Shown here piece after piece: positions 1 through 23,505 of a stretch of DNA of 64,000 bases (position 1 is the first letter of the stretch; each line of letters starts with the position of its first letter). A program made the translations under genes and the position numbers. Source of the DNA: Magallana gigas (lineage: Eukaryota); the NCBI RefSeq assembly GCF_963853765.1, contig NC_088854.1, forward strand, positions 51,522,001 through 51,586,000. The letters run 5' to 3'. The notes beneath the pieces were generated by a model, which saw nothing but the letters and a program-made list of their open reading frames with translations, made no database searches and was not told where the DNA came from.

Positions 1-269
1 ACTGGAGTGATATGAATTAGAAACAACAACAAAGATGCACACATGAGTAATCGATGTCTTTAAAACTGATATTCGCAGTATAAAAACAAGTGAAACATGT
101 AAAGGTATAAATAATTTCCTGGTTTTCACATCAATTGTCATTTCTCAAGTAACACAGGAACACATCATGCATTATGCTATAACTATACAGGGGTTTGGCC
201 CGGAAGCATCACGCATAGCTTCGGTATACGCAAGGGATGTCCGCACTCGGTAGAATCAAAGTCTTGAAA

Positions 270-3236
270 TCACGAAAGTCTCAATTGAACTGTGTTTTCT
301 TAAGCCATCATATCTAAAAGAAGAATAGGAAATGTTTAATTTTTGAAAAACACATAACGATGTTTTAACTTTATGATATGTGGTCTATTACTGGAGATAA
401 TGAAACCTCCACTGTTTTATTGAATCCAGATTTTAAATGTGAGCATCCTTACCCAACATGACAGCCTCTCTGACTGTTTTCGGACAGCACATGGCGCTGA
501 ACTCTCCTGAGTAGAGGTTACAGACCTGACCGACGGGGCAGGCGTTGGGAATGTTAGGCTGGCAGGGTCGCTTCAGACGGCTAGGGGTGATGTCGCACGC
601 CTGGAACTCGGCTAGTTTGTTGTGGCACAGAACGGCACCCTCCATCACCGACAACTCTGGAATACACAACGAATCAAATAGTTAAATAATTCATATTGGA
701 ACTAATTCAATTAATGAGTGTTTAATTTTTTCAAATAAAATTGCAATGTAAGAACTGAGATTGTATATTCGTCAAAAATTTTCTTCACTTTAGCTCTGCT
801 TTGAGTACTGTGAAAACTTACCTAATCCTAAAGTCATTGCTACCATTGAGGCTTTGCCTCCGTCGGCCAACATTTGTTGTACTGTTTCATTCCCTGGTGC
901 TGGCGGCACAATGCCCTTACAAACGATTGGTTTTTGGAGGGGGTTAACATCTAAAAGTAATTAAACGCAAATATCTGTTTAGAAGTCCATAGCATTGTTT
1001 CATAATACTAGTAGACAAACGTATGTGCAAAATTCTAACTCTATCAGTTGATGGGTTTTACCTATGCCTGCTTCACGAGGGTTCATGGCTTCTGCAATTT
1101 TCTGGTTGACTCTAAGTTGAACCATTTGGTTTCTCATCTGCTTCAACTGATTGAGAGGATCCATGGCGGTCATTGCGTTACCAGACATCCAGGAATTGGC
1201 GCTGCTAGGAACCGCAGGGTTGGTGGGAGCGTTTGGATTGTTAGCGACGAGATTGTTTGCGGCGGCGGCTGCTGGTTGGGGTGGCGGCAGATTCTGACCG
1301 AATGCAGCAGCCCCGAGTAATCCCTGGGCCAGCATCGCCGCTGCGCTCTGCTCTGACATCATGTACATTTGTTCGGGGGTCATTTGTGAGAACTGCTCAG
1401 GAACATTGTTACCAAACCATTGAGAGAAATCAGCTTTGGCCAGAGTTCCTGCCCCTGATGTTGCCGCGCTGTTGGCTGCTTGGCCGTTGTTATTTGGGGC
1501 TGCAGGAACCATTGGCTGGGCGTTGACTGCGGTTTCAGGCTGAGACGGGGAAGGGGCAGCTGCAGGAGCAGCTTTTTGCACTGGTGCTGGTAGCGGGTTA
1601 TTGACTATTGGCGCTACCCCAGAAGTTTCTGGACTTGGCTCAGGTTTGCTAGGAGCTGGAGCTGCGTTTGGAGAAAGTTCACCGACTTGAATAGCTTTTA
1701 CAATTTTGGTTTTGAGAGATGACTCAGGAGTAGTGCTATGCGCGCTTTCCTGAACAATTTTTGACTTACCAACGGGAGGTGAAGCAACCTCTTTAGCCTT
1801 ATGTTTGAAGCCAACAAATGTAGCAGCTGGAGCCTGCTGAAGCTTTTGTCTTACACCTTGTCCTTGTGCACCTAAAAATTGTTGAGAATAAGAGGTCATT
1901 TGCTCTTGTCTTTGTGAATCACTTGTTTTGGATTTGTTGTTTGTGGATGGAAAATATACATTTGATCCTCTGTTGCTTATGATGTCTTTCATACTAAAAG
2001 TGGGCCCTAATCCGAGGTTAGAATGTGTTCGTTGGTCGTGTTTTCCACGTTTTAAGTTAATTTGATCTGGCATATGACTAAGACTCTGGCAATTTATATC
2101 TGAAAAAGATATCGGAAATGTCACAAGAAAGGAACTCAGCACTGTCTCAGAGCGTGCGCGCGACGCAAAGGCGACTTGTGACCATGATCGTTCTTATCGG
2201 CGAGGCGCTTGAATTTTTATATCAAATGCCTATATATACAGATTGCAAGGTGCCAGTTAATGAGACATTTGGATAATAGCAAAAAAGCAGAGCACTAATT
2301 ACCTTTTCATATAATCGCCGAATCGCAAAATTTACATTTCAGTAGTGGTAATGAGCATCAGATTTGCTATATATGTTAATGGCTATCGTCAGCTCTCTCT
2401 AAATCACGTTTGATTTGACAATTTGGCGCGCAGTGATCATCTCGAAGTGCTGCATTAATTCAAATTTAATGAGTTAAATTTACTGTTCACTTTTGTTCTC
2501 TCCTTACAGAAAAAGAGAGTTTGTTATGACATAACCATTAATTCTAGTCTACATTGTTGGATTTCCTTATGTCACATCACAGACTTCTAATGAGTTTACG
2601 CTATATTTAATGAAGCAGATTTAAGCGTTTGCGGGAATACATTAAATTAATTTTCCCTTGAGTGTTATTAAGAAAACAACGCAGTATATCCTTATTGTTT
2701 CAAAGTTTCTGTTTGGTTAATTTGAAAAAAAAAGAAAATTATTTTTTGCTTTTAAGGAAATTGAAGTTCTAATCGTTATCATATAGATCTATTTTTTAAA
2801 AATAATCATATAAATGATATATTGCTTTTATCAAATACTGGGGGTAATCGATCCTTACTGTTTCTTTAAAATGACTCTTTAGATAGAAAAATGTATACGT
2901 TTTTATAACTAAGTTGATTTTTTGTGTTGCAAATTCTGTTTGCATTCAAATTGTTGCTTGACATACAGTCATGATTGGTTTGTACTGTTAGAAAAATTAA
3001 ATGATTATGACAATAAATTTTAACTAATATCTTTTGAACATCAATATTTAAGCACTTTAAAGCAATGAAATGAAACTTCAAACTATGTGTCTTCAAAATG
3101 ATTTTAAAAATTGACAATAAAATACATTTGTTAAATTTGAAACTTTTCAAATATCATTTGATAATGAAAAATAAATAAGTAAAAAAAACTTACATGTTAC
3201 ATGGATTAAAGCTAGAAAACAAAATATCCTCTTCAT
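270..3236 (-). CDS. Secreted low-complexity (Ala/Pro/Gln/Asn/Met-rich) protein with C-terminal Cys-rich module, about 477 aa, 5 coding exons
   Basis: Exons 3236-3194 (MKRIFCFLALIHVT, donor GTAAGT), 2099-1062, 950-822, 656-453 and 289-270. All junctions are GT-AG phase 1 and total 1434 nt. N-terminus MKRIFCFLALIHVTYINC looks like a signal peptide. The tail has CQPNIPNACPVGQVCN...MCCP. The last micro-exon (VQLRLS*) is the least certain. Confidence 0.8.
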
Positions 3237-3401
3237 GATTTCAAAATTCGTTAAGTCCCCGTGACACAAAGTAATGTGATCTTTTCTCTTCCTACCCTAC
3301 AATACCACTTGTCAACGAACGGCACAGCGCTCCGTTAAAAAGATGAACAGGTCATTAACATAAACGTGATGTCGGCGCGATTAATTGCTGAAACAAACAG
3401 T
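2966..3401. repeat. Duplicated block A (intron, signal-peptide exon, proximal promoter), copy 1
   Basis: Colinear with 7143-8291 from cagtcatgattggtttgtactgttag to aaacaaacagt. Copy 2 carries an extra insertion at 7213-7916. Confidence 0.95.
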
Positions 3402-4217
3402 GAAATGCATCTATGTTTAATTGTTCTAATTTCTTTCTCATTATGACCCTGTCATCTGACCTCAGTTGTGGTGATCGCCATGACGTCATCTGATAAATTA
3501 CGACCCTGTTAGACAGCGTTTAATTTACATATATTTAATAATTTGAATCACTGAAATAATATTTTATATTTCATTTCAAGAATTTTTTTTTTAATTTTTC
3601 TTTTCGGTTTCTATATTCATATTTTCATAAATAGTTTTACGCTTTTCCATTAAATTTTGTCGCTGTCGCTGTTATGGTTGTAAAGGTTTGTAAATATGGT
3701 TTTCTTATCATTCGTACTATTGTATTACAGAAACCAGTAGATACTGATAGCTACAGTGCTGGAGACTTGGGTGCAGACGTTGCAAAATGGAAAGGCGTGA
3801 GTGCACAAATCAATTAAACGTCAAAACACATACAAGTACGTGTAGATACTTCGAAAACTTTATCTAGTTCAGTAAGATAAGAGTATTTAAACGTAGTTTA
3901 CTCGTTTGTTTCGTGTCTTTCCTAGAACTTTTTACAGGAATTGAACAATCGCATGCAAAGGTCTTTAGTGTCTCGGTGTCTTCATCGAATTAACGTTTCC
4001 CAAAAACTGTCTATGCTGTTGACGTCTCACGTAAAACTTTCACTTTTGGGATCTCAGTTTCAGTTTTCATAGACAGTGTTTTAAGTTTTTGAAAAATAAA
4101 CGTGCCCTGTCCTCTTGTCAACAAGACTCTGGCAATGAAAAAATCTGGATCTGGATCTTTCTATTGTGGAAATAAATTTTACAATGTAGTTATAACAAAA
4201 CAATATTCAATTGTTAA

Positions 4218-4656
4218 AGGTCACGATTTTGGTCAAGAATTATTTTTCCGAATTTAATATTTACAATGCCTCAATAAGGCATTTTTAAAAGACAATCAAA
4301 ATTTGAGGGTCTTTTGTTGAATTATAAGCGAGTTATTGAGTTTAATATTCTTTGTTATGTGAACAAAACTGTTGTTTACATTTTGAATGTTGAAGTGAAA
4401 TTTTGAGTTTAGACCTAAAATGAATGTGTTAAACTTTAAGAACTGTTCATTAATGCTTTAAACATATGTAAACAAAAACAGGACACGAAACTTGTTTACA
4501 TGACAAAGAATTGTAGGCCATTTGTCTTGCTTATAGTTCTATGACTGACTCTCAAATTTCATATGATCATTTGAAATGTTAGAAATGCATTCCTAAAGCA
4601 TAGTGTGTAATAAAAACAAACAAATAAAATTTGACCAAAATCGTGACCATGCCTCT
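4218..4656. mobile_element. TTAA-flanked MITE (Kolobok-like), left TIR partly deleted
   Basis: TTAA at both ends. Right end is cgtgaccatgcctct; left end aggtcacg lacks the ggcatg bases. It sits at the same site in block B copy 2 (16026-16505), so it predates the duplication. Confidence 0.8.
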
Positions 4657-4929
4657 TTAAGGATATGTACAATGATACCATTTCAAAAAATATGTTAATC
4701 GTTGTAACAAGTAAAGTCGATATACATATAGATATACGATTTTAGGAATACTCTCTGATTAAAGATAAATCAGAAACGATGAGATTTCTCGTATGCACTC
4801 TTCTTCAGAACTATTGGAGTCATTTCCCCACAGAGGAGCACGGGTGTTATTATTGCTACATCTGAATAAATTTCATTCCGAATACAATTATGTCCAAGTC
4901 TAGTAAAGATTACATTACTAACAAAAGTA

Positions 4930-5057
4930 NNNNNNNNNNNNNNNNNNNNNNNNNNNNNNNNNNNNNNNNNNNNNNNNNNNNNNNNNNNNNNNNNNNNNNN
5001 NNNNNNNNNNNNNNNNNNNNNNNNNNNNNNNNNNNNNNNNNNNNNNNNNNNNNNNNN
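4930..5057. other. Assembly gap (run of N)
   Basis: About 128 consecutive n characters. Confidence 1.
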
Positions 5058-6641
5058 TGAGCAAACAATCCTTTTTAAAATGAATATAGGGCTATTTGGG
5101 ATTTTGGGTTTAGAGAATATTTGATCACGTGACCAACCAAGTTCATTTCGTAGTGAACCTTTTTATATTGCAATTCATTTCTTAATAGACCTCCAATTAG
5201 TCTGCTAGCATCTCATCCATTATGTGCTACCTTGCATCCTGGAATACGTAAGCTGGGCATTTGCAGTTCATAACATCATGTTCATTGACTAAATTAAATG
5301 TAGTTTATTTAGCTGAAACGAAGGAGGCATGTTTGTGGGATCAAGAATATCAATTAAATCCCACTCTTATTGGAGCTTTATGAAATTAATTTGTTGCTGA
5401 TCCTTTAACGCATTCAACTTCTGATAGTGACGCTAAATATTCACATGATATAGACAAACTTTGAACTTTGGTACCTGGGGGGCTGTTTCAAGAGAAGGCT
5501 AAAAAAGTAATTCCCAGAAAAAGAGGGCGGAAAGAAGTAATGATTATCAAAATGTTCCTAAAAGGCTTTAAAATGGGAATTTATATATAATAGGTATAAG
5601 AGGAGAAGTTGGGGCATTTTTTCCATAGACTTTACCAATATATGATGGTAAAATTGAATCTCACAATTTTGAATGGCTTTCTGGTTTCCGAGTCCTAGTA
5701 AGCAAAAATTGTGGGATCATTGTTTTAATGTATGCAGGTGAAAACTACTGTTGAAGGTGTATTTAGTACCTCTGTAAATGGGATGATATTTCTAGAAAAT
5801 AATATATTAGAGATGTTATTTTTAAATATTAATAATCAGATTTGCATAATGATTGCCTGACCTTTATATATCATGGTCATTTGTATTGTTCACTGCTTTT
5901 TACGATATCAATTAAGGAACAGGGGTCTATCCGGAATAAACCGTACGTCTATAGAAATCTTGTATGACGTTACTCTGTCATAACCACGGGGACACAGGTA
6001 TGAAGGGTGCACGTGTATCAGGTAACTTTAAGTTCAAATAAAATGTCATATCAAACGGTCGGAATGTACTAATACAAAACTAAATTTAAACGACTTCACT
6101 TTCTCTTCAAACTTTCTTTTGACAGATATATGTGTTTTTATTGTATTCGCTAATTTAGGCGCTCACAAAAATGACACAAACGTACAGTTTCACGATCGCG
6201 AGGAATTCATGATAATGACTTTGTTACTCAATTACTGTAAATCACGGAGAAAAATAAAACTTGAAATTTCTTGTCTAAGGTCGTGAAAATTTTAATTGTG
6301 GATAATCATCTATAAGCCAAAACTGCATGATGCGATCCCTGATTAAGCACGCCATGCCGAGTTTAATTAGCACAGATTAATGTTTAAAGACATGCCCTGT
6401 GTTCAATTAACAAAGTGATGGATCTATTTTTACCCACATTTACACCATTATGACATATATTAGCAGGGGTCTGAATCTTCTTGATAGTACATGTACATGA
6501 GCATTTGAGTAATAAATAGTAATAACAATAAAATGTTGTGCATTTAAAGTACATTTATTGAATTTGCTTAATGATAATATTACTATTTTTGTCCTTATAA
6601 TTATCACACGTATTTAGTGGTGCAATTGTAAGCTCAAAGTT

Positions 6642-8122
6642 TCATGGTAGGCCTTCTTTCTCTTGTCCCCCATGTTCCTTTTCCATTTCCCGGTCATCCC
6701 TCTCAGCCATCAAATCCTTCAGCTCTCTAAGAACCGCCTCGCACAGCATGTCTTCATTCTCACTGTCAAACCCCCGATCCTCTATCTTGTCGTCCAAAAA
6801 GCCATCCAGGAAGTCTTTCCCATCCTTGAAATTCCTCTCTTTTTCTTCCTTGACCTCAGTTCCATCATAGACCTTCTCTCTCTTGTCCCTCCTGTTCCTT
6901 TTCTTGTCCCAGTCATCTCTCTCAGCCAGCAAATCCTTCAGCTCTCTAATAACCGCCTCGCACCACAGTCTGTCATTATACTGCTGTTCCTCACTTTCAA
7001 ACCCTCGATCCTCTATCCTGTCATCCAAAAAGCCGTCCACGAAGTCTTTCCCATCTTTTTTTAATTTAGAACTTTCATTTTCAGCTGCAAAATAAGAAAT
7101 CTATTGAATTTCCTTTTCATATACTTGCTTTAAAATGTTTTTCAGTCATGATTGGTTTGTACTGTTAGAAAAATAAAATGATGACAATAAATTTTAACTA
7201 ATATCTTCTGAATGGTCTCGGGTGCGTTCGCCCTATTCACACGTTTGTCTTAGTCCGTTCGCTCTAGGTCCGTTCGCTCTAATTATCGTTCGCCCAAATT
7301 ATCGTTCGCCTTAAAGGGACATGGTCACATTTTGGACAATTTGTTTTCCGATTTTAATGTCTACAATGCTTCAGTAAGGCATTTTTAATAAGCAACCAAA
7401 ATTTGAGTGTCATTTGTTGAGTTATAAGCGAGTTTTAGTGCTAACAATTCTTCGCTATGAAAACAAAGCGTTTGTTTACATTTTGAATGTTGAAGTGAAA
7501 ATTCCAGTTTTAGACCTCAAATAAATGTGTTAATCGTTAGGAACTGTTTATTTATGTTTAATATGAATAAGAAAATAGACAAATCAGCTTGAAAAAGAAT
7601 TTTTACTGGTATATTGAACCTATGTAAACAAAAACAGGGCACGAGCCTTGTTTACATGACGAAGAATTGTGAGCCCTGTATCTTGCTTAAAACTCATCGA
7701 CTGCATGGCACCCAAATTTCATTTTATCATAAGAAATGCATTCATAAAGCATTGTAAATAATAAAAGCAGAAAAATAAAAATTGATCAAAATCGTGACCA
7801 TGTCCCTTTAAACCTCGCTCGCTCCTTGTTTATAAATAAACTATATTATAAGTTATTTCATTAACTTTAAACGGCGTCAAGGGCGAACGCGTTTTAGAGC
7901 GAACGAACAGCCAATCCTTCTGAATTTCAATATTTAAGCACTTTAAAGCAATGAAATGAAACTTCAAACAATGTCTCTTCAAAATGAGTTTAAAAATTGG
8001 CAATAAAATACATTTGTTAAATTTGAAACTTTTCAAATATCATTTGATAATGAAAAATAAATAAGTAAAAAATACTTACATGTTACATGGATTAAAGCTA
8101 GAAAACAAAATATCCTCTTCAT
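6642..8122 (-). CDS. Putative secreted acidic protein with two internal repeats, 161 aa, 2 exons
   Basis: Exon 8122-8080 (MKRIFCFLALIHVT, donor GTAAGT, phase 1) joins the acceptor ttttgcag at 7084 and reads in frame to TGA at 6642 (486 nt total). Repeats DF[VL]DGFLDD[RK]IEDRGF...CEAV[IL]RELKDL[LM]AERDD are separated by KKRNRRDKR. Confidence 0.7.
7213..7916. mobile_element. Non-autonomous DNA element with subterminal gttcgc[ct]c repeats and 8-bp flanking duplication
   Basis: Absent from block A copy 1. CTTCTGAA lies at 7205-7212 and 7917-7924. gttcgccc/gttcgctc repeats at the left end, gggcgaac/gagcgaac at the right end. Confidence 0.75.
7315..7807. mobile_element. TTAA-flanked MITE (Kolobok-like) nested in the previous element
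   Basis: ttaa-agggacatggtcac ... gtgaccatgtccct-ttaa. Confidence 0.85.
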
Positions 8123-8374
8123 GATTTCAAAATTCGTTAGGTCCCCGTGACACAAAGTAATGAGATCTTTTCTCTTCCTACCCTACAATACCAGTTGTCA
8201 ACGAACTTACGGCACAGCGCTCCGTTAAAAAGATGAACAGGTCAAAAACATAAACGTGATGGCGGCGCGAATAATTGTTGAAACAAACAGTCAAATTCTC
8301 GACTTGTACATTCCGATAATGCATTGCGGCGGATGTTAGGGTCAAGCGATGTCAGGGGTAAAGCGCCATTAGAT

Positions 8375-8700
8375 ATTGTTATATCCCTGTAAAACAGTTA
8401 CTATATAACTCTTTACGAAAAAAAGTCCAGCATTTTGACTGTTGGACTGGAACTGTTAGATTGGAACTGTTAAAATCGACTGTTAAAAAAGACTGTTGAC
8501 CTGTGACGTCACATTCCGCGAAAACGTGTTATTGATTAGAAGGGGTATAACAAAAAAGTTGTTGATTGTGGTCGAGGGCAACAGTTGATCTATCGGACCG
8601 GCTCGAAAACTGTTGCCCGCGGCCTTCGGCCTTGGGCAACAGTTTGCGACCCGGTCCGACAGATCAACTGTTGCCCTCGACCCCAGTCAACAACTGTATA
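8375..8700 (-). mobile_element. Hairpin-headed non-autonomous element (Crypton-like)
   Basis: About 140-bp near-perfect palindrome at 8557-8695 centred on ggccttcggcc. Subterminal inverted motif ttgttatatccct / ggggtataacaa. Confidence 0.6.
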
Positions 8701-8711
8701 CTGTTTTCGAA

Positions 8712-11294
8712 ATGGGCAAAAATTACTTTTGTGTTGCATACGGCTGCAACCACCACCGTGCCTACGGGGCAACTTGTACATTCTTCACATTTCCCGAGGA
8801 CCCAGAATATTTTCAAAGGTGGGTCAATGCCTGCAAACGAGAAGTTGTTTACGAAAGTGGCAAGAGAACGAAGTGGACGCCATCAGAATACCAGAAGCTT
8901 TGTAGTTGTCACTTTGAAAACGACCGGTGCCCGGACCCAAAATCAAGAAAATCGGGGAACAAAAACAAAATTCCCACGATATTTTCACACAAGGCAAGAA
9001 CATGTAATATGTATATATTTACGTAGGCAATCACCAATATCATAAATAGGTCAAAACATGTAGGTTTTATATATGATATACAAGTACAATCGAGGAATAT
9101 AACGTTAGACCTAAACATTACGTAGGCTTGTACATGCTTTTTAAACTTTATCTTGTACTTTTGTGCACTGTTTACAAAATTTTAGTCTTATGCATATAAA
9201 GAATAATCCATGAAAAACTGTATTCCCATAATACCACTGGCATGGGTGTAGCCTGGTTCCCGAGGCCTTCCGATTGTGCAAGCACAGAAGGCCTTCTGTG
9301 CTTGCACAATCGGAATGCCTCGGGAACCAGGCTAGCATAGGTGGTGCTACAGTTCTCATTTAAATTTCACATTTCATTTTTTAATTTCTCATTTACATTT
9401 AAAATTGCATGAGTCATTAGTGTTTCTGAACTGATATATACCATTGACTCTTAATGGTCAGTGCCAATAATTCCCTGTGACACAATTACCAGTATTCTTA
9501 TCATCTTTTAAAATAACTCAAATATCTAAATCTAAATCTAAGCATTTTGTATTTTATTCTGTTATTCTTTTATAATTAGGAAAACCAAAGAGAAGACGTC
9601 CAAATAGGATCACATGATAAGCTACAGGAACCATCACCAACTGCATCTTCTTTTTCTGAAAGTACAGGTAATCAGTTTTGCATAATAAGCAGTAAGAGTC
9701 AGCTATTTGTTAGATTTTATTGTCACATTTCATTGAAAAAAAAATACGTTTTATCTAAGGAGCCAATGTGGTCTAATAGATTACTGCATATATTCCAGGG
9801 AATTAGAAGTTAAATGCTCTATTTATTTTTAGCTTCAGTTGACACGGTTTCAGAGACTACCAATCAGCATGAATCTCTCCAAGAGTCATTGAGAGTTGGT
9901 GAAATATATACTTTTTTTCTTGTTTTAAAATTTGTATTTTTGAAAAAAATGACTAGATTTTTAAAAAATGTATGAACAGAATATATATCTGGATCATTTC
10001 GCTGACTTACTCAAACCATATATATTTTAGAGTTATTTTATGCGATTAATAGGTTATTCTATTAATTTTACAGGCACCAGAGAGGAATGGTCATGATTAT
10101 TTACAAACACCGTATGACAGGACGAGTTTCCAGAATTTTGAAGATCTAAGTTTAAGTGACCCTGATTTCACTAAATTTTTCAATTATGTTCAAAAAGACT
10201 CTAAGATTTACCAAGAAATGTGTTCCAAAAATCAGATCTTCAAAATGGAAGTCATACAGCAAAATAAACAATTATTTAATTTTTACACTGGCTTGGATCT
10301 TGATGTTTTCAACTCATTATTTACCTATCTACAACGAAAAGCTTCATCTATGCAGTGCTTCCATGGTGAAAGAACAACATATGTCCAACCATTTAATCTG
10401 GATGGCTTTGGTGTGAAGAGAAAGCCTTGTGTCACCAGGCAGCTTAATCTACAAGGAGAATTCTTCAGTGTTTTGTATCGTTTACAGACAGGACATTTAC
10501 TGGGAAAATGTAGTCTTCGCTTTGGTGTGAGCACCAGTCAGTTCTCCAGAAATTTCACAACCTGGATCAATCTCTTATCTATTGAACTGGAACTTTTATG
10601 TAAAAACGCAGAGCCAGATGAAGATGTTGGACTTGCAAGTTGATTCAAACCATTTCCAAACTTGAGAGATATTTTGGACTGTACAGAACTGTTCAGTGAA
10701 ACACCTTCAAGTGTGGATTACCATAAACAGACTCACAGCAATTATAAACACCACTCTACAATAAAATTTCTAGTTGGGATCCATCCCTCAGGGGCTGTGA
10801 CATACATCTCTAAAGCTTATCCTGGAAAGTCGTCAGACAAACAGATCACACAAGAAAGCTTGGACCTTATTGACTCCCTTATACCAGGACAAAAAGTTAT
10901 GGTGGACAGGGGCTTTACAATTGAAGAGGATCTCCCTTGTGGTGTCAAATAAGTTATTCCTTCTTTCAATGGTGCAAGCAGATAACAACTTACCGCAAAT
11001 GAGCTATCAAAGTCAAAAGTCATCTCCAGGGCACGAGTTCATGTGGAACGATGTATGCGTAGGATTAAGTCTTTCAACATTCTAAGACAAGAACTAAAAC
11101 TATCGCAAGTTGATGTATACGAGCAAATATTCAAAACCTGTGCCTATCTTGTTAATTTTCAAAATCCGTATTTAAAGCTGCTTGGTCCGATTTTTTTTGT
11201 AATTACAGTATCAATTTTTTTTCCATACAAACCATTTATCTTAGACAGCTATGGACTTTCTCCTATTTACACCAGCAGAATCAGTCTCCTTTAA
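8712..11294 (+). pseudogene. THAP-domain DDE (DDE_Tnp_4-like) transposase pseudogene
   Basis: THAP motif MGKNYFCVAYGC...FTFP...W...LCSCHF...IPTIF. Later LDCTE, YKHHSTIKFLVGIHPSGAVTYIS, VMVDRGF and RVHVERCMRRIK. The DDE exon has three in-frame stops (TGA 10641, TAA 10950 and a TAA near 10983). Small intervening exons near 9580-9667 and 9833-9898. Confidence 0.9.
9249..9334. mobile_element. 86-bp palindromic mini-element TAGCCTGG...CCAGGCTA with 9-bp TSD
   Basis: Near-perfect palindrome. Flanks are GCATGGGTG (9240-9248) and GCATAGGTG (9335-9343). Confidence 0.8.
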
Positions 11295-12209
11295 AAGTTA
11301 GAAATATTCAAAGTAAATAAAAATTATTATTTCTCTTTGGGCAAACGAAAAAACAAACCAAAATGCATCACGGGAATGTTTAGAAAAGGAAACCGCTTGG
11401 TTTCGTCCCCCGAATGATTGGGGTTATTCAACCCGCATGATATGCATCGATTGTAAAGAAAGCAGACTTTGGAAATATTAGCAAACAAAACGTACACATG
11501 TTTATTTGTAATTTGTCTGATCATTTCGACCTTTATTTAAAGCGATGACAAAGTCGTAATACAACCATACCCGTCTCGTCGTCAGGGGTGAAATTTAACA
11601 TGAGGCGAAATAACGCGGTACCTTTTAATGTCGTTTGCTTTGTTAGCAATTTTTGTACGTATTTTTCTTCATTGAAATTTGGCATAATTGACGGGTAAAA
11701 CTACTGCAATGTCTATTATTATACATATACTAAGCATAGCCATCGTTTAAAAGCGTGCATAAAATTTGATATAAAATCGGACTAAGCAGCTTTAAAGTCT
11801 GATGATTATGGTGTTTCTGAACTAAAAAATAATGCTGATACATAATTGAGATGCATATATTTTATGTTATGCAAGTTCAACTGTCATTGTCTGATGTAGA
11901 GTATACAAAAGTATTGAGTTGGAAAATAATTCTGCTTAATATACACACCACCAAGTTCTATTTGTGTGATAAATACTTGTACCCTGTATCGTGTTTTACC
12001 GTAATTTCAATTTGATATTAATTTAATAAAAATGAATGGGTTACTTTTTCTATTTATTTCATATTATCAAATACATGTTCATATCACTACAAACTTGTTT
12101 AAAATCATGTTTTAATAAGGTTTGGGGATCGATATTTTTATAATTCAAAACTTCAAGAGCAAAGAAAAATTCAGAATTGATTTCAAGGAAACTGTGAATT
12201 GTCTGACTT

Positions 12210-13933
12210 TTAAAATATTATGTCACAGTTCCTTACACAAGTAGGACAATACCATTGACAATCTAAATCTTCATACTCGTAAGTATAGTAGACACATGAC
12301 CAATGATACCATTTTCTACATACACAGTTGCACTGACATAAAATGCCCTTATCCTTTTCTTTCTCCAAAGATCTTAACCAGTGCCCACATTTGATATTCA
12401 AGTCTGAGAAAGTTGCTGCCTCTGACTCATTAGGACGAGCACTCATCTTGATTAGGTGTGGCCCTAGAAATTTTTCAAAAAAAAGAGATATATTTTCAAT
12501 AACAGTATTCCAGTACATTTGGTCAAATTCAATGACTTCATGAACATAATCAGCAGGTGAACATACAATGAAGTGGGTTTTGTGGATATTCGTCACACCC
12601 ATCTGTACCTGAACTTGAGTGTAATACTTATGGTTTCTGTCCACTGGCGTCGGAAGCAAATTGAAAGTGGGGGGGGGGGGGGGGGGGTGGGGGGGGGGGC
12701 TAGACAAATCCTCAGAAATATTGAGGAAAAAAACCGAATTCCCAAAATCATGGAAATCCTAATCCGTGGGGGGGGGGGGGGGGGGGGGGGGGGATATCTG
12801 TACTTCAAAAAAAATTTTTTTTACCTACCAACATTTTTTCCCCCAAATCATGAAATTCCTAATCCGGGGGGGGGGGGGGGGGGAAGTATGTCTATGACTC
12901 CAACATTTCAATCTTTCAGGGTACATTTAGGAACAATTATCTTTGCTACAAGAAAAAGTGGGGGGGGGGGGGGGGGGGGTGAACCCTCTATGATGCTAGA
13001 TCCCTAATGGTTAGGTCTAACTCGGCAAAAAAAATGGGGGGGGGGGGGGCTAAGCCCCCCCCCTAGCCCCCCCCCCCCCCCCCCCCGGTTCCGACGCCTA
13101 TGGTCTGTTAAGTGTAATCTTTTCATCCCATTTTTTTCAAAAAGAGAGTTTTCTCAAAGTCATGAATATCCAACACAATGAGGATATAATCCTGATTCTC
13201 TCACTTTTGTGTTTACATGACATTTTTTCATGTCTTCCTCAAATTTTCGCAGAGCTACTGGTTCAAATTTGTTGCCATATTCAGTAGCTTTGTTTCCTTT
13301 AAATGATTTTTCCAGGAATGTTTTCAGTAGGCTGCTGACATTTGGGGTTTTCCCTGCTTTTAGACTTACCATGGCAGTTTTAACAATGTGTGCATTTGAG
13401 GCTGTAATAATACCTTTTCTGTAGTCATGCCACCAAACATTTTTTGCCTGGCCTTGAGTGCTTTCTTCAGTGGCACGGATTTCCTCTGGCGTTCGCTTTA
13501 CAAGTTCAATTAAATTTGTCAAGCTATCTGTATTCTGACTTAATTGTAGAGCTGTACCAGGTAGAGATGGTTCTTCTGGCAAATTATCCATTTCAGTGGC
13601 TATTTCTTCTCTGGATGGAACCCTGGGATCACTGCATTCTGTTACAGTATACATATCTGGAAGAGACTGAACTGAGTGTTCTTTGTAAAAAAAAAAATCT
13701 GTCTTCTGGGGGTCTAAATTTAGAGGGTTGGTATAGCTTGTTAATTGGGGCATTTGGTTTACACTCTCTTAAAGAAGAAAACAACTGTAGGCAATCTTGA
13801 AAATGTACTTTCTGGTCATTGGGATGTCGAGGATCATGCTCAAAAGCTCTGATTTTCTTCTTTTTCGGTGCCTTGTTGAATTTCGTCTTGTGAATTGCAA
13901 AGTCATGAAATTGTTTTGGTTTGGATGATGACC
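12210..13933 (-). pseudogene. YqaJ/lambda-exonuclease-like plus PHD-finger protein pseudogene
   Basis: TQGQ...W...RKGIITAS, ATEYGNKFE, ESGL, then NHKYYTQVQVQM and PHD CQCNCVCRKWYHWSC...WYCPTC. Disrupted by a frameshift in an 11-T run near 13690, apparent loss of the SPDG/EIKCP segment, and a MITE at 12641-13103. Confidence 0.85.
12641..13103. mobile_element. G/C-homopolymer-rich MITE with 5-bp TSD
   Basis: Termini CCACTGGCGTCGGAA ... TTCCGACGCCTATGG. TCTGT lies at 12636-12640 and 13104-13108. Removing it restores LNRNHKYY in frame. Confidence 0.9.
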
Positions 13934-15214
13934 CTGAAAGACAGGATAATCAAGTTAAATGTATACTGTAATTCTCAAATGATTACTTCATATAAATGCA
14001 TGCTTTTCTATTACATATATTAAGTGTATAATAAAAGAGTTACATCTCATTGAAAAACATGAACCAGCACGCTTTTCACATTATGTTAAAAATCATGATT
14101 GAGTACAAATATTTAAATGTGGATAATTTTCTCACAACATACTCATTCCTCACTTGATCAAGACCATGTATAAAACTGTACTTACCTTCGCTATTCCACA
14201 TACTTGATTCAAGTCATTGATTAAATTCTTTTCAGTGCATTAGATAACTTTCACAACATTGAAATTGAGCAAATTAACAGCAGCAGTATGATGTCAGAAC
14301 AAATATAAATACATAGACCAATCCACACTTTACAAACGTTATATCCCTTGGCCGCCATCTTTGGGGAAAACCCCATATATTTCTTAGCCTTTGTAGTTTA
14401 GAGGGTTGTAACTTCGTCATTTGATATTAAAAATCCGTTTCCACTGTGAATATTTTTATTGCCCCAAGTTGGGGCAACCCACATATCGAAGGAATAAATC
14501 ATATCCCAAGAGATTTCTTCAGAGGACGCCAAAATATTGGGTTGCTTAAAGAAGGGAAAAGTTGCTTTTTCCCTTTTGCCTTTGGGTTGACCCCGGAAAG
14601 GGGAACAACTTTTGCAGCAAAGTGTGGATTGGACTATTGTCACGTAGATAAATTATTTAGGCAATGATTTGTTACATATACACGAACATCGCTTGAGCAG
14701 TTTATTAAGTCGGCAATTAATTCACCATAAACGAAACCGTTAAATGATTAGATTTTATTGCAATCTATGATTTGGAGAACTAAATGATACTTATCTCAAG
14801 AAGTCGATAGCGCGGTTTTTTTTTAATTTATAAAACAAAGTTGATTTTTTTTATAGCTCAAATCAAGTCCAAGTCTTTAAAATATGTGTTTGATTCATAT
14901 ATGAAAATATATATGATATATGAATTACAACAAATTGAACAGCTAGTAAATTTGCTTCTGGCGCCACTGACATGTATAATGTTCAAGTTCAAGTTCTTTA
15001 TTCCAAGAGACAAATATCTCATAGGTTATATGCATGTGAACATATACATATTAAATAACAAGTAAGACAAAAAATAGTGTACATAATTAATTTTGATAAT
15101 TCACATTAAAAGTTCGATGCTTGTTTGCATAATATAAATATTTACCTTAATTACACAGTTCTTTAGTATTAGATGCAGATGATAACTGAATACCTTTATA
15201 GACACTTGGTTTGG

Positions 15215-18200
15215 CCTCAGTTGTGGTGATCGCTATGATGTCATCTGATAAATTACGACCCTGTTAGACAGCGTTTAATTTACATATATTTAATAATTTG
15301 AATCACTGAAATAATATTTTATATTTCATTTCAAGAAAATGTTTTTTGTATTTTTCTTTTCGGGTTCTATATTCATATTTTCATAAATAGTTTTACGCTT
15401 TTCCATTAAATTTTGTCGCTGTCGCTTTTATGGTTGTAAAGGTTTGTAAATATGGTTTTCTTGTCATTCGTATTATTGTACTACAGAAACCAGTAGATAC
15501 TGATAGCTACAGTGCTGGAGACTCGGGTGCAGACGTTGCAAAATGAAAAGCGTGAGTGCACAAATCAATTAAACGTCAAAACCCATACAAGTAGGTGAAG
15601 ACACTTCAAAAACTTTATGTAGTTCAGTAAGATAAGAGTATTTAAACGTTGTTTGCTCGTTTGTTTTGTGTCTTTTCTAGAACTTTTTACAGGAATTGAA
15701 CAATCGCATGCAAAGGTCTTTAGAACTCGCTCGGTGTCTTCATCGAATTAACTGTCTATGCTGTTGACGTCTCACGTAGAACTTTCACTTTTGGGATCTT
15801 AGCTCCAGTTCTCATACAATTTATTTCCACAAAAGAAAGATCCAGCTTCGTTCGTCGCCTTTGTGCAACCACATAAACCTTAAACCAAGAAAAGATCATT
15901 TTATTATTGTTTGAACATATTTCATTGTAGGGTCTTGTTGACAAGAGGACAGGGCACGTTTACCTTTTAAAAACTTAAAACACTGTCCACAATGTAGTTA
16001 TAACAAAACAATATTTAATTGTTAAAGGGGCATGGTCACGATTTTGGTCAAAAATAATTTTTCCGAATTTGATGTTTACAATGCTTCAGTAAGGCATTTT
16101 TAAAAGACAATCAAAATTTGAGGGTCTTTCGTTGAGTTATAAGCGAGTTACTGAGTTTACTATTCTTTGTTATTTAAACAAAACTCTTGTTTAAATTTGA
16201 ATGTTGAAGTGAAAATTTGAGTTTAAAACCTAAAATGAATGTGTTAAACTTTAAGAACTGTTTATTAGTGCTTAAAATTAACAAGAAGATATCCAAACAG
16301 CTTGAAAAAGATTTTTACTGGTAAATTGAACATATGTTAACAAAAACAGGGCACGAACCTCCTTGTTACATGACGAAGAATCGTATGCCATTTATCTTGC
16401 TTATAGTTCTATAACTGACTCATATGATCATTAGAAATGCATTCCTAAAGCATAGTATAATAAAAACAGAAAATAAAATTTGACCAAAATCGTGACCATG
16501 CCTCTTTAAGGATATGTACAATGATACCATTTCAAAAACCGTTAATCGTTGTTACAAGTAAAGTAGATATGCATATAGAAATACGATATTAGGAATACTT
16601 TCTGATTAAAGATAAATCAGAAACGATGAGATTTCTTATGAACACTCTTATGCACTATTCTTCAAAACTACTGGAGTCATCTCCCCATAGAGGAGCACAG
16701 GTGTCATTAATGTTACATCTGTATAAATTTCAATCCGAATAAAATATTATGTCCAAGTCTAGTGAAGATTACATTACTAAGTATTTATTTTTCCTAGATT
16801 CTTTAGTTCTTTTTTTTTTAATCATAATAGAGTATACACTGTACGCATAAGCAAACAATCCTTTTTAAAAAAATGAATATAGTGCTATTTGGGGTTTTGG
16901 GGTTTAGAGAAAATTTGATCACGTGACCAACCAGCTTCATTTCGTGATGAACCTTTTAATATTGCTATTCATTTCCTAATAGATCTCCAATAAGTCTGCT
17001 AGCATCTTATCCATCATGTGCTACCGTGCATCCTGGAATATGTAAGCTGGGCATTTGCAGTTCATAACACCATGATCATTGACAAACGCGCAATTTATTG
17101 CTGAAATGTAGGAGGCATGTTTGTTGGATCAAGGATATCATTTTAATCCCATTCTTACTGCAGCTTTATGAAATTGATTTGTTGCTGCTCCTGTAAAGCA
17201 TGCAACTTCTGAGGGAGACGCTAAATATACACATGATATAGACAAACTTTGAATTTTGGTACATGGGTGTGGGGTCTGTTTCAAGAGAAGGCCAAAAAGG
17301 TTACTCCATAACAAGAGGGCAGAGAGAGGTAATGATTATTAAAATGTTCCTAAAAAGCTTTAAAATGGGAATTTATATATAAAAGGTCTTAAAGGATGAG
17401 CAGGGACATTTTCTCCCAAAGACTTAACCCGTATATGATTGTAAAATTGAAGCTTAAGGTTTGTTTTGTTGTTATCGTTATCTTTCTGGTTTCTGAGTCT
17501 AGTAAGCAAAAATTGTGGGATCATTGCTTTAATGTATGCAGGTGAAAACAACTGTTGGAGGTGTATTTAGTCCCTCTGTAAATGGGATGATATTTCTAGA
17601 AAATAATATATTAGAGAAGTTATTTTTAAATATTAATGATCAGATTAGCATAATGATTGCCTGACCTTTACACGCCATGGCCATTTGTATTGTTCACTGC
17701 TTTTTACGATATCAATTAATGAACAGGGAATATATCTATAGAGATCTTGTATGACGTTACTCTGTCACAACCACGGGGTCACAGGTATGAAGGGTGCACG
17801 TGTATCAGGTAATTTAAGTTCAAATAAAATGTCATATCAAACGGTTAGAATGGACTAATACAAAATTAAATTTAAACGACTTCATTTTCTCTTCAAACTT
17901 TCTTTTGACAGATATATGTGTTTTTATTGTATTCGCTAATTTAGGCGCTCACAAAAATGACACAAACGTACAGTTTCACGATCGCGAGGAATTCGTGATA
18001 ATGGCGTTGTCACTCAATTACTGTAAATCACGGAGTAAAATAAAACTTAAAATTTCTTGTCGAAAGTCGTGAAAATTTTAATTGTGAATAATCACTTACA
18101 AGCCAAAACTGATGCAATCCCTGATTAAGCACGCCATGCCGAGTTTAATTAGCACAGATTAATGTTTGGAGACATGCCCTGTGTTCAATTAACAAAGTGA

Positions 18201-18421
18201 TGGATCTATTTTTACCCACATTTACACCATTATGACATATATTAGCAGGTGTCTGAATTCTTTTTGATAGTACATGTACATGAGCATTTGAGTAATAAAT
18301 AGTAATGACAATAACATTTTGTGTATTTAAAGTACATTTTCTGAATTTGCTTAATGATAATATTACTATTTTTGTCCTCATAATTATCACACGTATTTAG
18401 TGGTGCAATTGTAAGCTCAAA
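15215..18421. repeat. Duplicated block B, copy 2
   Basis: Colinear with 3460-6639. Confidence 0.95.
16026..16505. mobile_element. TTAA-flanked MITE (Kolobok-like)
   Basis: ttaa-aggggcatggtcacg ... cgtgaccatgcctct-ttaa. Confidence 0.85.
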
Positions 18422-19044
18422 AGACATCAGCACTAAACATGTTGCGGTTTTAACTGAAGGACAGTCATAAATGTTTTAGGTTCAACAAGCTAAACAAGTT
18501 GTTTTTTGTTTTTTTATTTTTTCTTTCCTTTGTACAATCCTTGTTATGTATAATTCAACCTGCTATCTCAATTTTCCATTCTCTAAAAAAAAATCAAACA
18601 AGTCAGATTTACAAACAATAAATATACACATGCATAAGTGTTTAAGAAAAGCAACTAAACGTAAAATATTGTTTTCATATACAGAGAAAATTATTTACAT
18701 GCATATCATAACAGATGAAGAAAAAAAAATCGTTTATTTTTTTTCTTCACATTTTTAATATCATTACTACGTTAATACGAACGATCATTTTAGATGTGGA
18801 TCTCTTAATCAGACCATTCTCAAATGGAGACTGGGCGCGAAATGCCAAGGACCAAACCTATGTCCGCAACGGAAAATTATTTAAAGGCCGCAGCTTTAAT
18901 CTGAAATTTAAAAGTAATATTAACACTTAAGTCTGAAATTAATGCGTGGATTATTGCCTATGTTGAGTCATATCCTGTTGGGAAAAAATTCAGAATATTT
19001 CAGGATTTTATTTGAATACCAAAAAGAGTTCAATCTAATATTAA

Positions 19045-19536
19045 AGGGGTATGGTCACGATTTTGGTCAAATTTATTTTTCTGTTCTTATTATTTGCAAT
19101 GCTTTAGAAATGCATTTCTAATGATTAAATGAAATTTGGGTGCCAGTCATTGAGTTTTAAGCAAGATACAGGGCTCACAATTCTTCGTCATGTAAACAAG
19201 GCTCGTGCCCTGTTTTTGTTTACATAGGTTCAATATACCAGTAAAAAATCTTTGTAAAGCTTGTTCGTCTATCTTATTATTCATTTAAAGCATAAATAAA
19301 CGGTTCCTAACGATTTACACATTTATTTTAGGTCCAAAAGTGGAATTTTCACTTCAACATTCGAAATGTAAACAAACGCTTTGTTTACATAGCGAAGAAT
19401 TGTAAGCTCTGTAACTCGCTAATAACTCATCAAATGACACTCAAATTTTGGTTGCCTATTAAAAATGACTTACTGAAGCATTGTAAACATCAAAATCGAA
19501 AAATTAATTTTTGACCAAAATCGTGACCATGCCCCT
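19045..19536. mobile_element. TTAA-flanked MITE (Kolobok-like), opposite orientation to the 7315 copy
   Basis: ttaa-aggggtatggtcacg ... cgtgaccatgcccct-ttaa. The internal sequence is the reverse complement of the 7315 copy. Confidence 0.85.
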
Positions 19537-21532
19537 TTAAACCCAGTTGCATATCCGCATACATCTTCTCAAGTCAAGGGTTTCTGATCCGCTCCGCTCT
19601 ACATGATCCGCAAATAAAACACAACCAAACAAACAAAACATCCCCCCCCCCTAAAAAAAAAAGACAATCACAAAAACAAACAAACAATAACAGCATTCAA
19701 AAAGAACACATCTGACGGTCATTACAAGATTAAATGAACATTGAACTGTTAAATTGCATGCGAAACTTACATGTATTAACTTTCTATACTCTTGAGTTGC
19801 TTTCCATCTATGCATAAACCAGAACTTTATCAGTTTATTACCAAAACAAAATGTAAGGAGTAGAAAATAGCAGAATATGAGATTGTCATATAAAAACAAG
19901 TAATTCAGATCTTATGACAAGTTTTCCGAAAACATTGTGTTTTACTAAAGCACGTCTTAACAGAACACATTATTGCGTTCTAATGAAATTATTAATGACG
20001 TTCATCAGGCAATAAACCAAACTTGTAAAGCTCAGGATGCTACTCCTCCGGTTGTATAATAACGAACGAAAGCCGTTCCCAGATGTATGAGCATTAATTA
20101 CTGTTAATGAGTGCTTGAAGCATAAAATCTCAATTAAATCTAAATAAGAAAAACATCGTTAAATAACTTTATTTTTTGCACCAGTAGACTATTTATGTAA
20201 CGACATATTCTACACTTTATTATGCTACTTATTTAGACAATTTATTTCTTATAACAGTGATTCTGTCTTCTTTTCTCTGGATTTCAACTTTGTTCTATTT
20301 TTCCATAAGTATAATTTGTCATAAAAATAACTTTAATGTTTTATTTATTCTGTAACTTTGTTTGCAACAGACACAATTTACCACTGGAAATCATAGATCA
20401 TCCTGTGTATATGATGGACAGGATCAAAGAATCTCTCTTCTTTCTATAATATTCTCTTGGGAAGTGAAAAATATAACTAAATGTTGACAAGACTGTTCTG
20501 AAAATAAAAAATCAGTAGAAAATGATAAATATTATGTTTAGAAAAAAACTAAAATGTTTAAAAGTTACACGTATCCAAATTTTGGGTCCAGTGTATACGT
20601 GATCATTTCATATTTTACAAAAAAAATTGTATTGTGTCCTCAATAAAAATAAAAGCTGGCCATTTTTTCAGTCATTGCTACTTGATTGACACAGTATTTT
20701 AGATTCAAGAAGTTTACAGATTTTGTGAAAACTGTTAATATTTCCGGCTTAAATGTATATGTAATTTATTTAATTAATAATGTTTTACATAAAACCATAC
20801 TATGAATTAAAACAGGTGAGCCGTTTTGATATAAGTAAATCCTTAAACATCTTGAATTTTAAAGTGGTTTTTTTTCCACTTTTACTGAAGTGAACAATGG
20901 TGATACACAAAGTCCTAACAAAGTACAAGTATGGGTTTTTGCATCCATTTGTTTGGCTATTTTAATTCTCAATACAATTTACAAAAATTCCAAAAAATCC
21001 AAAAATAAATCAATGAACATTTAATTATTTTTTCCCTAAAAAACTAAATAAACAACCTTTTTGAAATAAAAATCATTTTTACACTTTGTTGTTGTTGCAA
21101 ATTTCACCCTTGACTTTCTTCTTAAATTGATGTATAAAAGGGGAGGGGGTATAAATCTTGTCAAAACGAGGTCGTGTACATTTCCATCGTTGTTTCTGAC
21201 TATTGGGTAGCTTATTCCATTATAAAACGTGTGTATTTTTATATATAGGCTTATTCCTTGCACAATTCTGGATATAAATGCTCATATTAGTTCGAAGTAT
21301 CGAGGCTAAAAGTTTTGTCTTTTTTTTTATTTTATACCATAACTATTTCATTAAATGATCGGGTCTTAACTTTCTGATAAAAGAAATCTATGCTGTCCAG
21401 AAATATCAAGGAAAGCAAATCTATCACACACAAAAAATTACAGAATGATACACAGTAAAATTGGACAAATGACATGCACCCTCTATTCCGTTTCAAGAAG
21501 ATTCTCTCAATATACTGAGACAACTTAGTGGA

Positions 21533-23020: not shown

Positions 23021-23399
23021 CCCAGTGTAGAGGTTGAAAATGTAAATGTTCCTGTAGATTTCAAGTAAATAAACATGTTTTAGCCAGACTTTGAAGTCTT
23101 TATATTCCGATCAATATAACAACTAATGGGACATGCTTCGTCATATGGATTGCTTTTTCAAAGAAATTTTAAATGGGTTTACTTGCATATAAATGCCATG
23201 ACAAACGACCTTGGTTAAATTTGGTCTCTATTTAAGAGTAAACCTCGTGTTGTTGTGGCTTCCTGTAATTGATTGATGGACTAAGTGGAAAACTAGCAAT
23301 TCTAAACAATTTTGTTTTATGGTTGGTTAATTCCTGAAACCTTTTCAAATTATGAAGTCAGCAACATTTTAATGAAGTCAGTTGATGACTTGATCTTAA

Positions 23400-23505
23400 A
23401 GGGGCATGGTCACGATTTTGATCAAATTTTATTTTCTATTTTTATTGTTTACAATGCTTTAGAAATGCATTTCTAATGATCGACCAAAATTTGAGAGTCA
23501 GTCGT
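23400..23505. mobile_element. Truncated TTAA MITE fragment
   Basis: ttaa-aggggcatggtcacg left end with no right TIR nearby. Confidence 0.7.

Follow-up and report, generated by a model that had tools for sequence, protein, structure and literature searches.

The window analysed here is a 64,000-nucleotide (nt) stretch of Magallana gigas DNA (contig NC_088854.1 of assembly GCF_963853765.1, positions 51,522,001 to 51,586,000 of the forward strand). Two genes on its minus strand, LOC105320276 (gene 1) and LOC105319450 (gene 2), start with the same signal exon and continue with unrelated second exons. LOC105319450 is probably a lineage-restricted chimeric gene of M. gigas that arose from three sources: a copy of the first exon of gene 1 with adjoining DNA, a piece of a PC3-like proprotein convertase gene, and a duplicated block that provides its 3' end. 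This assessment concerns the structure and origin of the gene, including its annotated splice; that the product has any function is doubtful.

An earlier note on this DNA, made from the sequence alone, had proposed that a duplicated signal exon stands in front of an unrelated exon. NCBI annotates this arrangement as a separate gene, LOC105319450, and the models spliced from the window equal the NCBI proteins at every residue, namely XP_011416832.3 for gene 1 (LOC105320276 isoform X1, 475 amino acids) and XP_065933206.1 for gene 2 (161 amino acids). Gene 2 is recorded under protein accessions of several dates and sources (XP_011415683.1, K1PRI1, A0A8W8LHW9 and XP_065933206.1). XP_011415683.1, the older accession to which the symbol LOC105319450 belongs, shares 98% identity with the gene-2 product. 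The alternative model K1PRI1, with 206 amino acids, was rejected, its first 60 residues being encoded nowhere in the window. Both genes are named only 'uncharacterized protein' in the retrieved records, one older gene-1 record aside; the older NCBI name of gene 1, 'POU domain class 6 factor-like', looks like a low-complexity artefact.

Sources of the gene-2 sequence

The 49-nt string that extends from the ATG through the GTAAGT donor has exactly two occurrences, at 3188-3236 and 8074-8122, both on the minus strand and with 0 mismatches; none would be expected by chance. It includes the 43-nt signal exon, which is identical at 3194-3236 and 8080-8122 and lies within a duplicated block whose copies, A (2966-3406) and A' (7143-7212 plus 7917-8296), are 94-95% identical. 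Copy 1 of the signal exon is spliced in phase 1 to exon 2099-1062, followed by three more phase-1 introns. The splice between exons 1 and 2 of gene 1 is present in three RNA-derived contigs (L007-L009), and one of these, L009, reveals that at least 118 nt 5' of the gene-1 ATG are transcribed. Copy 2 leads, again in phase 1, to exon 7084-6642, whose TGA stop codon lies 3 nt from the breakpoint of block B at 6638. With a GTAAGT donor, a ttattttgcag acceptor and phase 1 on both sides, an in-frame fusion is possible. The parts of the two genes are as follows.

300-3236, minus strand: coding span of gene 1 (LOC105320276), with exons 3236-3194, 2099-1062, 950-822, 656-453 and 313-300; every intron is in phase 1.
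2966-3406, minus strand: block A, the parental copy, with 170 nt upstream of gene 1, exon 1 (3236-3194) and the first 228 nt of intron 1.
8123-8296, minus strand: upstream part of A', a copy of the 5' untranslated region (5'UTR) and core promoter region of gene 1, aligned to 3237-3406; the sole ATG-adjoining upstream DNA common to both genes.
8080-8122, minus strand: coding part of gene-2 exon 1, 14 codons and 1 nt (MKRIFCFLALIHVT), followed by the GTAAGT donor.
7085-8079, minus strand: gene-2 intron 1, 995 nt, derived from A' (7143-7212 and 7917-8079), from an insertion resembling a miniature inverted-repeat transposable element (MITE; 7213-7916) and from the convertase flank (7085-7142).
7213-7916, no strand assigned: the nested MITE-like insertion, 704 bp, with a 9-bp target-site duplication (CTTCTGAAT); not in copy A.
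6642-7084, minus strand: gene-2 exon 2, with the TGA stop at 6644-6642; 146 residues and a split Ser codon.
6555-6560, minus strand: AATAAA, 82 nt 3' of the gene-2 stop, inside copy B.

The MITE-like insertion at 7213-7916 contains an inner element with TTAAAGGGACATGGTCAC-type termini, and the family has at least five copies in the first 24 kb of the window; relatives lie at 4219-4660, 16022-16509, 19041-19540 and about 23395-23513.

Exon 2 of gene 1 has orthologues of its own in other oysters, down to 53% identity, and is without similarity to exon 2 of gene 2; a Pfam search with it gave no match above threshold. Exon 4 of gene 1 matches Lustrin_cystein in Pfam below threshold (17.8 bits against a cut-off of 27), which falls short of identifying a shell-matrix protein and is a lead at most. 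The M. gigas records of gene 1 fall into two strongly different protein haplotypes, with 3 and 16 differences, respectively, from the window over 475 amino acids, and one of them is angulata-like. C. angulata, the sister taxon, differs from the window at 14 positions, and at 13 of them the M. gigas record A0A8W8LBZ9 / XP_011416832.2 is angulata-like.

Exon 2 of gene 2 lies within block C (6639-7142, 504 bp), which is present in a single copy within the window. Protein searches with this exon yielded the annotated oyster protein and, at E=1e-12 to 1e-16, short open reading frames (ORFs) of run assemblies. In one contig (L001), the matched ORF forms the terminal exon of a gene, and the exon before it codes for a P_proprotein domain. 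An exhaustive search among 1.84 billion representatives returned four clusters only: gene 2, a convertase of 757 amino acids, a convertase-tail fragment and a low-complexity artefact. The convertase is composed of an S8 pro-domain, Peptidase_S8 and P_proprotein, and residues 643-737 of its tail align to gene-2 exon 2. NCBI names it 'PC3-like endoprotease variant B' in both M. gigas and C. angulata, and its nearest solved relatives are furin and kexin.

Block C combines two kinds of convertase DNA, namely a 222-nt piece of the last coding exon, which encodes the tail past the P domain and is present head to tail in about 2.2 copies, and an inverted piece of the 3' flank (65-85 nt):

7056-7142, plus strand: flank piece, taken from DNA 3' of the PC3-like convertase, about 1 kb beyond its stop codon; it runs opposite to the coding units.
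6905-7058, minus strand: unit 1, a partial copy of the tail exon in the convertase frame, 82-83% identical to L011/L012.
6684-6903, minus strand: unit 2, a copy of the full 222-nt segment in the convertase frame, 82% identical, opening with the multibasic KKRNRRDKR.
6639-6683, minus strand: unit 3, comprising the segment's first 45 nt, all of which (45/45) match the convertase exon; its frame is off by one base.

The flank piece is 89% identical to positions 2398-2462 of L001 and 76% identical to positions 20747-20828 of the C. angulata sequence L012. Its antisense strand provides the polypyrimidine tract, the AG acceptor and the first 9 codons of gene-2 exon 2. Since the antisense strand of the C. 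angulata convertase flank already reads tgcag followed by ctgaa at this boundary, the acceptor pre-existed as a cryptic site. At the joint of units 2 and 3, a 1-nt insertion shifts the frame, such that unit 3 contributes the last 15 codons and the stop; both indels that distinguish the gene-2 units from the convertase are multiples of 3. In the gene-2 protein, gene 1 thereby accounts for 14 residues and antisense DNA that was once non-coding for about 9; the convertase tail, represented twice, makes up about 122 residues, and the frameshifted end adds 15 codons. The convertase gene and gene 1 lie on separate chromosomes in C. angulata, the former on CM046780.1 and the latter on CM046782.1.

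These results support the view that the second exon of gene 2 was derived from a PC3-like proprotein convertase gene, namely from the exon for its C-terminal tail and from its 3' flank. The gene-2 protein yielded no Pfam family above threshold, neither an S8 catalytic nor a P domain being found. Gene 2 is a derivative of the convertase tail that lacks the catalytic and P domains; it is not a convertase. The earlier description of exon 7084-6642 as unrelated to gene 1 stands insofar as the second exons are not homologous, and the exon that was then merely called foreign can now be assigned to the convertase tail.

Among the sequencing runs, the PC3-like tail exon and its flank occur in two distinct forms, represented by L001 (SRR14864979) and by L011/L012. 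The exon and 3' flank of the two forms are 83% identical and the upstream intron/exon stretch 88%, with a synonymous divergence (dS) of about 0.4 in the tail. The inverted flank piece in block C is nearer to the L001 form and the coding units are nearer to the gigas/angulata form.

The duplication and the ancestral state of the locus

The order of segments in the window is Y-B'-X-A'-C-B-A-gene 1, in which about 3.7 kb (B plus A) occurs twice in tandem. B (3457-6638) and B' (15212-18421) are 81-92% identical in BLAST alignments. Block C is located exactly at the joint, from the end of A' (7143, inside intron 1) to the start of B.

3457-6638, no strand assigned: block B, adjoining C and gene 1; it contains the gene-2 3' flank and UTR and the upstream region of gene 1 and holds a masked run at 4930-5057.
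15212-18421, no strand assigned: block B', contiguous with the unduplicated flank Y (18422 onward); the copy nearer to the single C. angulata copy.
8297-15211, no strand assigned: X, 6.9 kb between A' and B', which stands in place of the 50 nt found between A and B.

The ancestral state was determined by comparison with one C. angulata assembly. The reference locus aligns in a single path comprising Y (22000-18422), one B, one A and gene 1, with no C and no second A. This single-copy arrangement identifies gene 1 as the parent of the signal exon and settles the direction of the duplication, for which the earlier note had also allowed the reverse: gene 1 was the donor. The chimera has several identifiable parents with sharp breakpoints, A' having come from gene 1, C from the convertase and the 3' end from B. 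The AATAAA 3' of gene 2 is unique to copy B; the corresponding positions read AGAAAA in B' (about 18340) and AAAACA in C. angulata (L013, about 6830). The poly(A) signal of gene 2 may have arisen through a point change after the duplication.

How C came to lie at the joint can be pictured in two ways. The duplication joint would have taken up block C through a template switch in the course of replication-based repair, or the block would go back to the reverse-transcribed 3' end of a convertase mRNA. Two pieces from one distant locus, inverted relative to each other, match the inserts that template switching leaves at duplication joints; an inverted and direct pair from a single mRNA 3' end could equally stem from reverse transcription. 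Exon 1 of A' would then be spliced in phase 1 to the C exon, as annotated by NCBI, and B would supply the 3' flank with the AATAAA.

Segment X harbours a Harbinger/PIF-like element on the plus strand (THAP 8733-9026, HTH_Tnp_4 10218-10643, DDE_Tnp_4 10662-10952), a near-perfect 68-nt palindrome (8557-8695), a YqaJ-like exonuclease ORF (13160-13753, minus strand) and a PHD-like ORF (12210-12707, minus strand). Its ORFs are flanked by long poly-G/poly-C tracts at 12669-12793 and 13050-13090. In block B, a 69-nt segment (4072-4140) is inverted relative to B' (15987-15920) at 91% identity. On the plus strand of B, positions 3731-3789 form an exon-like open stretch of 59 nt with a polypyrimidine-cag acceptor and a gtgagt donor; the equivalent in B' is at about 15487-15545.

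Expression, divergence and competing explanations

Several observations weigh against gene 2 as an expressed gene, against selection on it and against a simple history. Several of them also speak for the strongest rival explanation, which accepts the DNA structure and takes gene 2 for a neutral by-product: an ORF that remained at the duplication joint, weakly or not transcribed and without function, that is, a proto-gene or a future pseudogene. We regard this as a serious possibility, albeit not the likelier one. No transcript with the 8080/7084 junction was found among all fetched Logan contigs that encode the exon-2 ORF (L003-L006, L010 and L014); all of them are genomic and contain the intron, so that the evidence for the splicing of gene 2 comes from annotation pipelines. 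The 161-amino-acid product is found in none of the Logan-derived members of the protein cluster, while gene 1 has many assembled transcripts. A search with residues 1-40 of the gene-2 product yielded the known cluster only, and no other protein of 88-281 amino acids shares these residues. The upstream DNA common to the two genes extends only 174 nt from the ATG, and at least 118 nt of it is 5'UTR. Beyond the shared 174 nt, the DNA upstream of gene 2 consists of 6.9 kb of transposon DNA, which separates A' from most of the parental upstream DNA. The duplicated promoter and the co-regulation of the two genes that had been inferred in the earlier note are not supported by these data.

With respect to transcription from A', RNA contig L009 (SRR12564931) contains in positions 1-165 all four A'-diagnostic variants of the 5'UTR joined to gene-1 exon 2 (comparison with 8074-8240 and 3188-3350). 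Its sister contigs L007 and L008 are of the A type and start exactly at the A/A' indel. L009 possibly reflects activity of the A' promoter with splicing past the C exon, a recombinant A'/A allele or a chimeric contig. It was not accepted as proof of a splice from A' exon 1 to gene-1 exon 2 since the 66-nt identity permits a chimeric contig and an allele is also possible.

The sampled sequences show the gene-2 ORF open in 7 of 7 cases. However, all polymorphic sites of exon 2 (5/5) are non-synonymous, and the probability that the ORF was kept open by chance is about 0.17 according to simulation (about 0.1-0.3). The ratio of non-synonymous to synonymous divergence (dN/dS) of the gene-2 units relative to the convertase is 0.44-0.87; values of 0.57-0.87, compared with 0.07-0.09 among the convertase orthologues themselves, indicate a release from the constraint on the parent. 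Purifying selection on gene 2 is not apparent, as dN/dS is not significantly <1, and the values fit neutrality. AlphaFold2 modelling of gene 2, based on a 9-row alignment, gave a predicted local distance difference test score (pLDDT) of 43, with helices of low confidence. Nor does the invariance of the signal exon speak for selection, as had been suggested in the earlier note: the identical A/A' run around the signal exon comprises 66 nt and the next identical run, within the intron, 72 nt, so that the adjoining intron is just as invariant, and at 3.9% divergence an invariant 43-nt stretch has a P of about 0.18.

An interpretation as a neutral by-product also agrees with the frameshift that already shortens unit 3 and with the C. 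angulata reference, which lacks gene 2 with no visible consequence. Arguing against it are the gene models that contain precisely this splice and are recorded under accessions differing in date and source, the good splice sites with matching phases, and the ORF, which is intact in every sampled sequence with both indels in frame. Furthermore, the in-frame units have changed much more than the out-of-frame unit 3, the canonical AATAAA follows the stop in copy B alone, and the A'-type 5'UTR is found in RNA.

The divergence data are also at odds with a recent duplication confined to M. gigas. Substitution divergence is 3.9% between A and A' and 5.3-10.4% between B and B'. Relative to the C. angulata copy, B' diverges by 1.3-5.2% and B by 5.5-10.4%, compared with 2.0% for Y and 2.6% for the gene-1 body. 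Trees of the distal and mid parts of B read ((B', angulata), B). B' is thus nearer to C. angulata than to B, which makes a recent gigas-only duplication too simple. There are two readings of this grouping. In one, the duplication is older than the coalescence of B' and the C. angulata copy, and unequal recombination then removed A'-C-B from the C. angulata reference haplotype; in the other, the two copies come from two deeply diverged haplotypes, such as exist for gene 1 in M. gigas. The clocks within the chimera conflict as well: units 1-2 differ from the convertase by 15-18%, with a proportion of synonymous differences (pS) of about 0.2, whereas the values are 5-10% for B/B', 3.9% for A/A' and 0% for unit 3. 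Dating by dN/dS and by three-way site patterns gave ages in conflict, and no date is given. Units 1 and 2 have in common 11 derived changes and each has 6-7 private changes per 141 nt.

These ages suggest another, in our opinion improbable, sequence of events, in which block C predates the duplication: a convertase-tail exon existed elsewhere or in an arrangement since lost and then gained a new first exon. The divergence of units 1-2 from the convertase is two to three times that of B from B', and the derived changes common to both units imply divergence from the convertase before the internal duplication. Against an older C speaks its position: the site where A' ends and B starts exists only after the tandem duplication, and both the window and C. 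angulata have Y-B' and B-A uninterrupted by C. In addition, unit 3 has retained complete identity to the convertase exon, and neither the exhaustive search nor that with the N-terminal 40 residues uncovered another protein with these units or, at 88-281 amino acids, with this N-terminus. The mismatch between units 1-2 and unit 3 could result from faster-than-neutral change of the in-frame part together with concerted evolution of the two units; alternatively, C could be older and unit 3 converted later.

Misassembly or a haplotype join, by which two alleles of one locus would have been set in tandem, is very unlikely. Oyster genomes are very heterozygous, B differs from B' by 5-10% with B' near the C. 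angulata allele, as would two haplotype classes, and C. angulata is single-copy. However, five genomic contigs from other sequencing runs (L003-L006 and L014) span both the A'-to-C and the C-to-B joints and reach 0.4-1.6 kb into B. At the diagnostic sites, their B parts are of the B type at 91/96, 128/132, 40/44, 20/24 and 19/24 positions. The sixth contig, L010, crosses both joints as well. The presence of the joints in independent contigs demonstrates that the arrangement is not a misassembly, one of the findings that, according to the earlier note, would have spoken against the chimera. Moreover, C is allelic to nothing at the locus, and gene 2 was recorded under several accession dates and sources. 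L010 was rejected as a sign of a polymorphic MITE insertion, as the 32-nt A/A' identity before the C joint lets a 31-mer assembly switch copies.

The run of N at 4930-5057 is part of B and falls between the two genes: read in the direction of the genes, it follows the gene-2 stop at a distance of about 1.6 kb and precedes the gene-1 ATG by about 1.7 kb. It touches no exon, so that no reading frame is affected. The sequences on either side of it align collinearly and without a change of orientation to B' (4921 corresponding to 16780 and 5060 to 16850) and to the C. angulata orthologue. L002 (GCA_963853765.1, OY970746.1, about 51.52-51.54 Mb) is identical to positions 1-18122 of the window except for 128 positions, which equals the number of N. 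Since these positions differ at unchanged length, the run is a masked stretch and no true gap, which further argues against a faulty join. In B' and in C. angulata, the counterpart of the run is an unaligned stretch of about 67-69 nt between the flank matches.

Descent of both genes from one ancestor with diverged homologous second exons, for which only the common first exon speaks, can practically be dismissed, since homology ends abruptly at 2966/7143 inside the intron and the two second exons are not homologous, that of gene 2 having a distinct parent in the convertase tail (E=1e-15 to 1e-16) and that of gene 1 its own orthologues.

The predicted product and comparable genes

If the annotated splice of the chimeric gene is used, the 161-amino-acid product would shed a signal peptide of about 15 residues and enter the secretory pathway as an acidic, largely helical or disordered protein of 146 amino acids. 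The N-terminus consists of MKR, a 10-residue hydrophobic core and V-T-S before the acidic body, which by eye fits the -3/-1 rule. The predicted mature protein has an isoelectric point (pI) of 4.55, contains 55% charged residues and two cysteines, one per module, and carries KKRNRRDKR at its center. This multibasic site splits the two convertase-tail modules, and cleavage by a convertase may take place there. Exon 2 of gene 2 is 57-60% identical in amino acids to the middle of the oyster PC3-like tail. As judged from the alignment, the product stops before the terminal segment of that tail, with the last approximately 20 residues missing, and would thus not include the extreme C-terminal amphipathic helix expected of a PC1/3-type granule-sorting tail.

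Free PC1/3 tail peptide modulates the enzyme in vitro. From this protein gene 2 differs in that it is without the pro-, catalytic and P domains and without the last approximately 20 residues of the oyster tail, contains the module twice and has an amino-acid-changing divergence of 15-19% from its parent. The mammalian PC1/3 tail, about 135 residues long, is released by cleavage at a dibasic site and has been proposed to help sort the enzyme to the regulated secretory pathway (PMC3174183). The most likely, though speculative, role of the gene-2 product would be that of a free-standing, convertase-tail-like cargo or modulator in secretory cells, secreted or sent to granules and perhaps processed at the multibasic site. 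It is quite improbable that gene 2 is a functional, fast-evolving secreted mimic of the convertase tail which, in M. gigas and not in C. angulata, tunes the activity or sorting of PC1/3-type convertases or is cut at KKRNRRDKR into two bioactive peptides. In that event, the excess change of the in-frame units relative to unit 3 would be a trace of positive selection. proSAAS, 7B2 and granin-like proteins have a signal peptide, an acidic disordered or helical body, internal multibasic sites and a possible connection to convertases. Gene 2 resembles them in layout and has no sequence similarity to them, as reflected in the lack of a Pfam match; an interaction between its product and a convertase is conjecture. 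A paper on oyster ganglion peptides did not contain the gene-2 peptide strings that were looked for.

The antifreeze glycoprotein gene of Antarctic notothenioid fish reportedly evolved from a trypsinogen gene, as described by Chen, DeVries and Cheng in 1997. Like gene 2, it has a recruited signal exon and intron, a body derived from a protease gene, an internal tandem expansion and a part from formerly non-coding DNA. It differs in that the signal exon and the body come from one parent and in that function and selection have been demonstrated. In gene 2, the signal exon stems from an unrelated neighbour and the body from a convertase tail on another chromosome, and the repeat is a 222-nt segment in about 2.2 copies, as opposed to the many copies of a 9-nt unit in the fish gene. 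In Drosophila, jingwei, Sdic and similar chimeric genes were formed via partial duplication or exon shuffling. They have in common with gene 2 a partial tandem duplication with a breakpoint in an intron, the joining of a 5' part to foreign coding sequence in matching phase and the absence from a sister taxon. In contrast to them, the foreign part of gene 2 is a 504-bp composite at a duplication joint and not a whole retrocopy or neighbouring gene, and its acceptor comes from antisense flank DNA. Gene 2 belongs to the known class of chimeric genes formed by partial duplication and exon capture; its three-locus origin differs from that of the fish gene. In a literature search no paper was found that mentions gene 1 or gene 2, and the chimeric origin of gene 2 appears to be previously unreported.

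Elsewhere in the window, exons of a BTB-BACK-Kelch (KLHL-type) gene are located at about 29850-33580 on the minus strand (BTB E=1e-33, Kelch_1 E=1e-22). Satellite arrays occupy 40899-42029 (about 166 bp), 42950-44406 (about 168 bp) and 47256-47749 (26 bp), and the region 50398-51824 contains dense long inverted and direct repeats with arms of up to 269 nt and 96-100% complementarity.

Every part of gene 2 can be traced to its source: a neighbouring gene, antisense non-coding DNA, the tail exon of a protease gene elsewhere, a stop codon reached by a frameshift and a poly(A) signal specific to one duplicate. As gene 2 is present in M. gigas assemblies and absent from the reference of the sister taxon, its age, population frequency and effect on fitness are amenable to testing in a farmed, genetically tractable species. 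Should the product act on the neuroendocrine convertase, the oyster would have made a regulator from a piece of the regulator's own target.

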